Virus record (IMG/VR): IMGVR_UViG_3300042261_001312
Coordinates: 1-64,000 of that record
Reading direction: 5' to 3' (one strand)
Length of the DNA stretch: 64,000 bases
Shown here: positions 33,027 through 34,086 of the stretch, one piece after another
How positions within the stretch are numbered: the first letter of the stretch is position 1
Layout of the letters: each line of letters opens with the position of its first letter
Notes under the pieces: model-generated
The model's input: only the letters and a program-made list of their open reading frames with translations
Told to the model about the DNA's origin: nothing
Databases searched by the model: none
Made by a program: the position numbers and the translations under genes

Positions 33027-33062
33027 TTATGGGGGTCTGATGTCAACCTATGTATTTTTCAT
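33027..33062 (-). CDS. Mini-ORF MKNT*VDIRPP with in-frame amber codon
   Basis: ATG AAA AAT ACA TAG GTT GAC ATC AGA CCC CCA TAA; starts 4 nt after the Pth2-like stop. Confidence 0.55.
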
Positions 33063-33066
33063 GGCT

Positions 33067-33396
33067 TTACTGATTAAGTGCTAAATCTAATTTTTTTGTA
33101 AATTTTCTTGTCTCAGGAGTACCGTAATAACAAAGACTTGTCATCTGGTTATCAATGTCTGGTTCAGTAAATGCCACAACATTAACACCATAATACTTTA
33201 ATTCTTCGTAAAGGTCTTTGAGTTTGTTTTCATCGTCAACTGACAATGCTACGAGATATTTGGATTCTCGCATCCAATCTTGGAAATGATTGGGAAATTC
33301 TTGTGCAAATTCTGCCAGTGAGTGGGCAGATTGAACTAATTGATATCCTGCACTGATATCTTTTCTTGTTACAGTAACTAATTTAACCTACGTCAT
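33067..33396 (-). CDS. Pth2-like peptidyl-tRNA hydrolase with in-frame TAG at codon 3
   Basis: ATG ACG TAG GTT AAA..., reading on as VKLVTVTRKDISAGYQLVQSAHSLAEF...FTEPDIDNQMTSL; GTATTTAT motif 18 nt before ATG 33396. Confidence 0.8.
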
Positions 33397-33455
33397 AACT
33401 TTTAATTTTTAATTATAAATACTAAGTGAATGCAAACTTGCATAATATATTTCAA

Positions 33456-33956
33456 TTATGCAAGTTTTTTTTGAATTTCTTTTATTTTTGCAATTAAATC
33501 ACAAAACTCTGTAAAGGATTTTGCTTTAACATATCCATTTGGATATGCGATTTTATATTCTTCGACGGCTGCATCACCATGTTTTGCCCTTACCTTTTCA
33601 GTAACGTCTTCCATCCATGTAAGATCGTATTGTCTTCTTTTAATGCTGGCAAATGGATGCACTGTAACTGCAATATCACCAACTTTCGCCCAAGCATTGT
33701 TATTGGTGGCATATCCTTTTGTCTTTCCAACAGTCCAACCCATTTCAGTAAATTTTGCAATTTCATTGGCAGAGAATTCGTCTTTTTCATTAAACAAATA
33801 TCCGTCAACAACACCGTCAATTGTTCCTGAATAATAGTTTTTAATAAGGTTTTCATCATCAGTATCAATTACTTGAAGATGACCATATTTGTCGGTATGT
33901 ACTTCAATTACATGCCTTAAAAACAATTTTAATTCTTCTCTTAAATTACAATCCAT
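33456..33956 (-). CDS. Hypothetical protein
   Basis: Starts 21 nt after the suppressor tRNA. Confidence 0.7.
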   Translation of the reverse strand: MDCNLREELKLFLRHVIEVHTDKYGHLQVIDTDDENLIKNYYSGTIDGVVDGYLFNEKDEFSANEIAKFTEMGWTVGKTKGYATNNNAWAKVGDIAVTVHPFASIKRRQYDLTWMEDVTEKVRAKHGDAAVEEYKIAYPNGYVKAKSFTEFCDLIAKIKEIQKKLA

Positions 33957-33976
33957 GATTTATAAATTTTTATTTG

Positions 33977-34047
33977 TGATTCTTGAGGGGGTCGAACCCT
34001 CGAATGCTGTTTTAGAGACAGGTGTTTTACCACTAAACTAAAGAACC
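33977..34047 (-). tRNA. Amber suppressor tRNA (anticodon CTA)
   Basis: GGTTCTT-TA-GTTT(AGTGGTA)AAAC-A-CCTGT(CTCTAAA)ACAGC-ATTC-GAGGG(TTCGACC)CCCTC-AAGAATC-A. Confidence 0.88.
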
Positions 34048-34059
34048 ATTTTAATATGA

Positions 34060-34086
34060 TACGAAGATAATGATAAAAATGTTACA
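34060..34086 (-). promoter_or_regulatory. ECF-type promoter for the suppressor tRNA
   Basis: TGTAAC-N17-CGTA about 12 nt from the tRNA 5' end. Confidence 0.8.

Follow-up and report, generated by a model that had tools for sequence, protein, structure and literature searches.

A conserved amber gate beside a phage suppressor tRNA: a probable tRNA-dependent translational switch for a Pth2-like gene and a leader-controlled partner

What does an amber suppressor tRNA decode in a phage that appears otherwise to end its genes in the ordinary way? Suppressor tRNAs with the anticodon CUA have been noted in the phages XacN1, GAP32 and BF, and the authors of the XacN1 work could identify no target for them. 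The same question is raised by the stretch of DNA studied here, the first 64 kb (64,000 nt, hereafter the window) of the 327,676 bp contig IMGVR_UViG_3300042261_001312. On its minus strand, to which all coordinates of the module refer, a tRNA(CUA) gene is followed by a gene resembling peptidyl-tRNA hydrolase 2 (Pth2) with TAG as its third codon, then by a very short open reading frame (ORF), the mini-ORF, with a TAG of its own, and then by a gene here called X. An earlier note on this DNA had proposed that the enzyme is made only when the amber codon is read through. The proposal of an amber-gated module is supported by the conservation of the early in-frame stop (the gate), by its linkage to the tRNA and by the covariation of codon and anticodon. 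The module is probably a translational switch in which the phage tRNA(CUA) is the trans-activator of a small conserved gene set.

The tRNA had been described in the earlier note as canonical, with the loop CTCTAAA, and the gene 580 nt downstream of it as Pth2-like, beginning ATG ACG TAG GTT; both descriptions, and the positions, held. The tRNA was recognised by ARAGORN and scored 64 bits (E 4e-13) against Rfam RF00005, for which the gathering score is 29. Its anticodon loop is CUCUAAA and its cloverleaf is normal except for one C-C mismatch at the top of the anticodon stem. It has no close paralogue in the window, identity to any of the 32 other tRNAs being 67% or less. The motif GTATTTAT precedes the leader ATG by 18 nt, within the usual range as noted before: the window has 26 copies where 7.5 would be expected, none of 100 shuffles reached 26, and most copies lie 15-22 nt ahead of ORF starts.

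Only the residues after the TAG were used as the Pfam query for the Pth2-like protein. They matched PF01981 with 26.5 bits (cut-off 23), residues 2-75 of the protein covering positions 2-81 of the 115 in the profile; a match from profile position 2 agrees with the claim that the N-terminal Pth2 region lies between the TAG and the next methionine. That methionine is found 39 codons past the TAG (residue 40), and a start there would lose the first strand and two helices. A profile built from 60 homologues matched the Pth2 of M. jannaschii in the PDB (2zv3, E 2e-11) over its full length, and human Bit1 (1q7s) as well. In the AlphaFold model (predicted local distance difference test, pLDDT, 96.1; predicted template modelling score, pTM, 0.89) strand beta1 comprises residues 2-8, directly after the TAG. 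The top 13 Foldseek matches in the PDB all belong to the Pth2 family (2zv3, 1wn2, 3erj, 1q7s, 1xty and 1rlk among them), with template modelling (TM) scores of about 0.8. Residues D77 and T83, invariant in the family, correspond in the alignment to the D and T of 2zv3.

When viral contigs were scanned with the single protein, eight loci were found, and a short ATG leader, an in-frame TAG and a tRNA(CUA) were present in 8/8. A profile scan of the viral contigs found 80 loci, mostly on contigs of 200-500 kb; together with 11 GenBank loci these make up the 91 loci (numbered with L below) used for comparison. The gate was found in 75 of the 91, as an ATG, zero to eight codons, TAG and zero to 11 codons ahead of the strand K-L-x-x-x-T-R-x-D, most commonly with one or two codons between ATG and TAG. 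These 75 loci represent 57 unique proteins, which form 34 clusters at 70% identity and 7 at 50%, and the position of the leader TAG is kept down to about 31% protein identity. An independent metagenome sample contained the gate in 62 of 66 unique contexts. The TAG thus stands in place where the earlier note had allowed that homologues might carry a sense codon.

The choice of stop is as marked as its position. The first in-frame upstream stop among 75 unique homologues is TAG in 68, TGA in five and TAA in two, in DNA in which short ATG-started frames ending in TAA are twice as common as those ending in TAG. All 60 ATGs in the 15 nt before the gate TAG lie in frame 0; frames 1 and 2 contain none. 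Of 57 unique gates, 56 have a purine directly after the TAG, versus 37 of 73 genuine TAG stops of long ORFs in the same DNA (p = 1.5e-10), and purine-U follows in 45/57 versus 21/73 (p = 1e-8). In E. coli, a purine at position +4 is well established as favouring amber suppression. The codon ahead of the TAG is not conserved, so of the ACN-TAG-GTT context reported earlier only the 3' side, a purine usually followed by U, proved general. A stop fixed in place with conserved in-frame coding on either side, the pattern of programmed read-through, was found for the Pth2-like gene and for the mini-ORF. In a control scan for cellular Pth2, in which alignment A1 served as query (A3 being too diverse), the genes of Nanoarchaeota were found to start M-(V)-Y-K-L-V-V-V-V-R-K-D-L from a plain ATG, with no suppressor tRNA nearby. 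A nonsense mutation, pseudogene or sequencing error might be suspected from public annotations, in which the gene is truncated or absent (GAP32_397, Serratia BF, phrog_34073). The same TAG is present in more than 130 independent sequences, the downstream domain is intact (model pLDDT 96), and this conservation refutes the explanation.

Some loci vary the arrangement. In L095 (LR756501) and L053 a second in-frame TAG, again followed by ATT, lies about 33 codons inside the Pth2-like gene; it may be a double gate or a sign of wider TAG reading in these huge phages. In L034 (3975-4991), L040 (4240-4983) and L023 (4204-4983) the ORF just upstream of the gated gene starts with a second leader, TAG and the initial 15-23 residues of Pth2, joined to an ORF like that of a homing endonuclease; the gate seems to have been duplicated when an endonuclease inserted at the 5' end of the gene. 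Directly downstream of Pth2 there is in addition a third family of genes (83-85 aa, with the motif IVFHFNKKH; L038:4443-4697; L047:~5527-5790). It is amber-gated in these two lineages, as MM-TAG-I and MT-TAG-I, and has an ordinary Met start in L035, L036, L052, L054 and L060.

A same-strand tRNA(CUA) was found within about 5 kb of the Pth2-like gene in 65 of the 80 viral loci, and one was present in 21 of the 22 gated metagenome loci having at least 1.5 kb of flank on each side. The earlier note had suggested looking for co-occurrence of TAG and suppressor in homologues; it is present in both samples, and the codon changes with the anticodon. In L120 and L165 the Pth2 gate is ATG-x-TAA, and the suppressor in the usual place has the anticodon UUA. 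The tRNA order of L120, Arg-Gly-Ser-suppressor, is that of the window, and the mini-ORF of L165 is also TAA-gated. The contig L045 (IMGVR_UViG_3300033066_002046, 4858-5030) carries the leader ATG AAA CAC TCC ACT ATG TTG TGAA, after which the Pth2 frame continues at +1. A tRNA 28 nt upstream of this leader ATG (Rfam 56 bits) has an 8-nt anticodon loop and the anticodon UUCA, the exact complement of UGAA, which makes L045 a candidate for natural quadruplet decoding. Three recoding signals (TAG/CUA, TAA/UUA and UGAA/UUCA) are therefore found, each with the matching tRNA, before the same gene.

Altogether four ochre modules were seen (L120:2595-3010, L165:1554-3625, L168 and L171), with a TAA Pth2 gate in all four and a TAA mini-ORF gate in L165, L168 and L171; tRNA(UUA) was seen in L120 and L165, the flanks of L168 and L171 being too short to show a tRNA. 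The ochre-variant mini-ORF still ends in TAA, which is readable by the same tRNA(UUA). In the Prevotella phages Lak-A1 and Lak-B7 (L092, L093) the N-terminus of the homologue is longer and has no stop near the domain, and a tRNA with the anticodon UUA, not CUA, lies about 700 nt upstream of it.

The gate could also be read as a start-stop ORF, in which ATG-x-TAG is translated as a tiny ORF and ribosomes re-initiate at the next codon (AUU, AUA or GUN) with no suppressor. The codon after the TAG is indeed ATT, ATA, GTT or GTA in 59 of 75 loci. In the cluster C mycobacteriophages, ATG TAG GTG or GTG TAG GTG precedes a gene annotated as peptidyl tRNA hydrolase (Bxz1 gp154, L089:2969-2979; Myrna gp84, L090:2974-2982); the GTG after the TAG has good Shine-Dalgarno spacing and is the start annotated in GenBank, and a tRNA(CUA) lies 130-300 nt downstream. 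Re-initiation should suit any stop, yet TAG prevails in 68/75 against the doubled frequency of TAA leaders, and the codons AAC, ACA, AAT, GGC and CTG also follow the TAG. It is precisely next to a tRNA with the anticodon UUA or UUCA that the stop becomes TAA or, with a shift of frame, UGAA, and the mini-ORF keeps an R-x-P-stop peptide just 4-7 codons past its TAG. Because the three signals each sit with a matching tRNA, a pseudogene is excluded and suppressor-free re-initiation is very unlikely.

The mini-ORF reads ATG AAA AAT ACA TAG GTT GAC ATC AGA CCC CCA TAA (11 codons). Its in-frame TAG had been pointed out before and proved to be conserved: a pattern scan of 825 kb of loci for ATG, zero to six codons, a stop gate, three to eight codons and R-x-P-stop returned 28 ORFs gated by TAG, four by TAA and two by TGA. 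All lie on the Pth2 strand, bar one artefact inside a tRNA gene (window 35236), and their positions range from an overlap with the Pth2 stop to a distance of about 1 kb past it. The codons of R-x-P vary synonymously (Arg AGA, CGA, CGC or AGG; last Pro CCA, CCT or CCG), and the middle residue is P, G, A or S. Selection thus appears to act on the peptide downstream of the TAG, which would imply that the TAG is decoded. An ORF beginning M-E-T (M-K in L041, L054, L081 and L085) follows 60-150 nt past the mini-ORF; in L011, L027 and L029 a 250-aa inserted gene precedes it. In the clade of the window this ORF is gene X, whose model is helical (pLDDT 90) and for which no Pfam, PHROG or PDB sequence match and no significant PDB fold match were found.

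The end of the mini-ORF is complementary to the start of X. In an RNAalifold consensus of ten relatives, CCAUAAUAAU (last codon, stop and 4 nt beyond) pairs with AUUAUUAUGG, which contains the X start codon, in 10/10, and the same helix is present in the minimum free energy structure of the window itself. The window duplex has -15.4 kcal/mol, equalled by none of 2068 control windows. In 11 loci the duplex has -13 to -19 kcal/mol, and of the sliding control windows, about 700-2000 in number, no more than 12 equalled it. Kept in its own register, the helix pairs a mean of 11.9 positions out of 16, versus 4.5-8.0 in registers shifted by 1-8 nt. Compensatory changes were found in L046, in which a UGA stop of the mini-ORF goes with AUC in place of AUU ahead of X, and in L032 and L040, which have G-C pairs at positions that are A-U or G-U elsewhere. 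Covariation support for the helix is moderate, most sequences being those of close relatives and several loci pairing weakly. As in ermC-type attenuators, the 3' part of a leader ORF pairs with the start region of the gene that it would regulate.

These features suggest the following mechanism. Ribosomes would start at ATG 33396 and reach the UAG at codon 3. If the release factor wins, a dipeptide would be freed and no enzyme made, because the first strand of the fold starts right after the UAG and the next methionine comes only 39 codons later. Decoding of the UAG by charged tRNA(CUA) would instead yield the complete protein with the Pth2 fold. The identity of the inserted amino acid is probably unimportant because the gate lies in an unconserved linker; the 65 unique suppressor tRNAs have only generic tRNA features in common and are very diverse in sequence. 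The mini-ORF, 4 nt past the Pth2 stop, would probably be translated by coupling. From the geometry of the ribosome footprint, a ribosome with the UAG in its A site leaves the 5' arm, which starts 18 nt downstream, paired, and one with the UAA in its A site stands on the arm. After termination at the mini-ORF UAG (codon 5) the ribosome would leave 18 nt before the helix, and the start codon of X would stay sequestered. After read-through it would run onto the 5' arm, dwell at R-P-P-UAA and free the X AUG. TnaC ends in R-P-stop and SecM in R-A-G-P, and termination after proline is slow; by analogy, a ribosome pause at R-P-P-UAA is plausible. The mini-ORF and the helix together look like an ermC-like attenuator that would be opened only by read-through. 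As to purpose, the preferred view is that the Pth2-like enzyme and X would be needed only once the suppressor is active, for example in recycling tRNAs trapped as peptidyl-tRNA when UAG termination is perturbed.

A broader alternative is general recoding of TAG to an amino acid (code 15), of which both TAGs would be just examples. It has in its favour the presence of tRNA(CUA), the rarity of TAG as a stop in the window, the second in-frame TAG of L095 and L053, and the existence of TAG-recoded jumbo and Lak phages (10.1101/2021.08.26.457843). The stops of the 68 window ORFs of at least 100 aa are TAA in 57, TGA in nine and TAG in two, so that the earlier statement that other genes use TAG as a normal stop stands, though only weakly. 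No sign of recoding was seen when the whole window, 64 kb of the 327 kb contig, was read with TAG, TGA or TAA as sense. Apart from the module, no ORF in these 64 kb requires TAG read-through; a single internal TAG has long open flanks, but in antisense. The hallmarks of code 15, many genes with in-frame TAG and TAG not used as terminator, were thus not found in the 64 kb covered, and the AT-rich flanks of relatives show no excess either. An ordinary sense TAG at an unconserved position would be replaced over time, and this one is instead kept to about 31% identity.

The gate is also present in cultured phages that use the standard code. It reads ATG GCA CAA TAG AAT in Cronobacter phage GAP32 (4 nt after GGGGTG), ATG ACG CAC TAG AAT in Serratia phage BF (8 nt after GAGGA) and ATG AAA TAG ATA in Tenacibaculum phage pT24, with an annotated tRNA-Sup 2.6-3.2 kb away in all three; in GAP32 and BF the Shine-Dalgarno sequence is placed for the leader ATG. 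In the complete genome of pT24, 18 ORFs of at least 150 codons end in TAG and the large structural genes are annotated as long uninterrupted ORFs in the standard code. A census of pT24 for a leader ATG, TAG and a start-less ORF found exactly one case, the Pth2-like gene; the same census gave 12 spurious matches with TAA and one with TGA. General recoding is for these reasons improbable, and the positional conservation would call for a regulatory reading even if late genes were interrupted by TAG. The idea of an intermediate stage toward stop-codon reassignment, raised in the earlier note, was not borne out: the module is old and stable in cultured standard-code phages, as pT24 with its 18 TAG-ended ORFs and one gated gene illustrates, and a transitional code is not needed.

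Further homologue matches were found in CBB, fHe-Yen9-03/04 and the Erwinia pEa_SNUABM phages, mostly with no annotated feature under the match. The gene is truncated to an internal Met in GAP32_397 (L097) and in the pT24 gp293 coding sequence (L096), no coding sequence is given for it in the Serratia BF record (286080-286417, L098), and the match of phrog_34073 is confined to residues 37-95 of the window protein, which suggests the truncated form. This amounts to a systematic annotation error, in which the TAG causes the gene to be truncated or missing in GenBank records and PHROGs. The homologue in XacN1 is a C-terminal domain and is ungated.

Several observations weigh against a tRNA-gated switch or narrow it. 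The decoding of UAG is deduced from comparative genomics. About 15 of the 80 viral loci have no tRNA(CUA) inside 5 kb, and the quadruplet case is a single contig, no relatives of L045 having been found in viral and metagenome contigs. In Bxz1 and Myrna the gate may be vestigial or bypassed by the annotated GTG directly after the TAG. In several loci (L014, L015, L016, L023 and L095) the pairing of the AU-rich helix is weak. The other 264 kb of the contig lie outside the window, which leaves room there for TAG recoding of late genes. In archaeal Pth2, catalysis is ascribed to an Asp in the segment D-x-G-x-T and a Lys in the segment G-K. The position of that lysine in 2zv3 is Tyr16 in the window protein, and R8, D10, Q19 and H22 are invariant instead. 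Because the catalytic Lys aligns with Tyr, the hydrolase activity is putative, and the protein is best called Pth2-like.

Ungated homologues (L075, L081, L085, L088 and L104) still adjoin tRNA(CUA), and the partnership of the Pth2-like gene with this tRNA would for that reason be more than gating. One form that it could take is a negative-feedback homeostat, in which the enzyme deacylates or hydrolyses the charged or peptidyl suppressor tRNA, so that rising suppression would yield more enzyme and thereby be damped; the gate would be real and its logic self-limiting rather than feed-forward. The persistence of the linkage in ungated homologues is in line with this, as is the unconserved catalytic Lys position, which hints at altered substrate chemistry, and so is pT24, which keeps a suppressor despite having only four tRNAs. 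The great diversity of the suppressor tRNAs argues against a dedicated recognition surface, and canonical Pth2 is not known to act on free aminoacyl-tRNA. A homeostat is on this balance unlikely, and the feed-forward switch is retained as the preferred reading.

The features of the module in the window are summarised in Table 1.

Table 1. Features of the amber-gated module and its surroundings in the window
Feature	Position	Strand	Basis or remark
Promoter-like motif GTAAC-N17-CGTA	34060-34085	-	ends 12 nt upstream of suppressor tRNA
Suppressor tRNA, anticodon CUA, class I, discriminator A73, no encoded CCA	33976-34047	-	ARAGORN, Rfam
166-aa ORF between tRNA and Pth2-like gene	33456-33956	-	lineage-specific filler, outside conserved module
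GTATTTAT motif	33415-33422	-	18 nt upstream of leader ATG 33396
Pth2 gate ATG ACG TAG	33388-33396	-	ATG 33396-33394, TAG 33390-33388; then GTT AAA TTA GTT
Pth2-like body, 106 codons + TAA (33069-33067)	33067-33387	-	Pfam PF01981, fold model
Leader mini-ORF MKNT-TAG-VDIRPP-TAA	33027-33062	-	starts 4 nt after Pth2 stop
Helix 5' arm CCA UAA UAAUG (last codon, stop, 5 nt beyond)	33022-33032	-	RNAalifold, 10/10 relatives
Helix 3' arm CAUUAUU AUG G, holds gene X start codon	32951-32961	-	RNAalifold, register test
Gene X, 107 aa, always downstream of mini-ORF	32631-32954	-	tblastn, 21 loci

The class to which the motif GTAAC-N17-CGTA belongs numbers 26 copies in the window where 0.8 would be expected, nearly all on the minus strand, and the motif is also found 13-16 nt upstream of tRNA(CUA) in L016, L029/L030 and L055. 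The earlier note had given the tRNA its own extracytoplasmic function (ECF) promoter. This is a reasonable reading because the motif class is real; we infer the promoter function itself. Of the 26 copies of GTAAC(C)-N17-CGTA, 18 crowd the first 10.5 kb (window 799-10443, minus strand) and the rest are scattered, which suggests one temporal gene class under an alternative ECF-like sigma factor; GTATTTAT would mark a second class. A scan for sigma-70 promoters gave background level only. A palindrome at 33434-33467 was considered as a terminator and rejected, its T-run being on the plus strand only, so that it does not evidently serve the coding strand. In the surroundings of the module only the tRNA family exceeds its Rfam gathering score.

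The 166-aa ORF had a tblastn match in none of the related loci. Directly upstream of the suppressor tRNA lies a 66-aa ORF (34114-34314, minus strand) with a TAG stop and a TAA four codons later; it has the GTATTTAT motif ahead of its start and is kept in 11 related loci. No Pfam or PHROG match was found for the 166-aa ORF, the 66-aa ORF, gene X or family Y. The window has a G+C content of about 31% and 33 tRNA genes, all on the minus strand (ARAGORN). Two paralogous ORFs for HNH-type endonucleases (34454-35137 and 36211-36948, minus strand) lie among the tRNA genes. Three odd ARAGORN calls, a tRNA-Cys(ACA), an 86-nt tRNA-Asn and an 85-nt tRNA-Gln (37694-37779, 37790-37861 and 62895-62979), may reflect introns or miscalls. 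Recognisable window genes belong to nucleotide metabolism and RNA repair (ribonucleotide reductase, RNA ligase, methyltransferases). In a DNA similarity search of GenBank phages with the window, only tRNA and HNH fragments matched, which shows this phage to be absent from the collection searched.

The Pth2-like gene would be the first conserved, testable target for the suppressor tRNAs of cultured standard-code phages, and among the covarying cases is a candidate for a natural tRNA that decodes a quadruplet, with its target identified. A wider proposal, advanced tentatively and rated a little short of an even chance, is that in jumbo phages with the normal code the suppressor tRNA is primarily regulatory. 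It would activate a mini-regulon of the Pth2-like gene, the leader-controlled X and, in some lineages, a third gene, with gates co-evolving with the anticodon up to ochre and quadruplet forms. The system could then act as a checkpoint on the balance between phage tRNA and host release factor and possibly as a pre-adaptation for TAG reassignment, and it is a plausible starting point for phage tolerance, then expansion, of stop-codon reassignment.

A literature search found no description of the gate and no paper linking phage Pth2 with suppressor tRNAs. A survey of jumbo phages notes PTH2 but not the gate, and the survey of phage recoding mentions neither Pth nor hydrolase (10.1101/2021.08.26.457843). 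Recoding as a means of regulating expression was already proposed in the latter work, for the timing of late or lysis genes (10.1101/2021.08.26.457843). The code-15 phages (TAG to Gln; Lak, crAss-like and other clades) likewise have a phage tRNA(CUA) and in-frame TAGs that depend on it. In the module, by contrast, a single TAG stands at a fixed place in the leader of each of one or two genes and TAG is otherwise a stop, and the clients are a translation-factor-like enzyme and a leader peptide, not structural or lysis genes.

By its parts, the module appears to combine tRNA gating of the bldA type, leader control of the ermC/tnaC type and stop sensing of the prfB type, a combination for which no description was found. 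In Streptomyces, the bldA tRNA-Leu(UAA) gates genes with TTA codons, and there too one tRNA species acts in trans on a small gene set carrying its codon. The bldA codon is a rare sense codon, whereas here the codon is a stop or a quadruplet, failure to read it means termination, and the tRNA competes with the release factor. In ermC and cat/cmlA attenuation the 3' end of a short leader ORF also pairs with the initiation region of the next gene, and a parked ribosome would open it; the Arg-x-Pro-stop of the module leader is reminiscent of the arrest peptides TnaC and SecM. Here the signal would be UAG decoding in the leader, not an antibiotic or amino acid, and the stalling is putative. The release factor gene prfB (RF2) has a programmed frameshift at an early in-frame UGA, and ArfA is under the control of transfer-messenger RNA. 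In these cases, as in the module, a translation-quality factor is made according to the handling of a stop signal near its own 5' end; prfB and ArfA sense the cell's own factor, whereas here a phage tRNA would be read and what is made resembles Pth2 rather than a factor for release or rescue. In synthetic amber switches, a TAG in a leader peptide makes downstream expression dependent on a suppressor (PMC6412442), and a feed-forward loop has been built as well (PMC7969014). The module would be a natural tRNA-gated genetic switch with a leader peptide that senses read-through, a design that synthetic biologists built independently; the device logic is the same, and here it is natural and conserved across phage lineages that infect several bacterial phyla.

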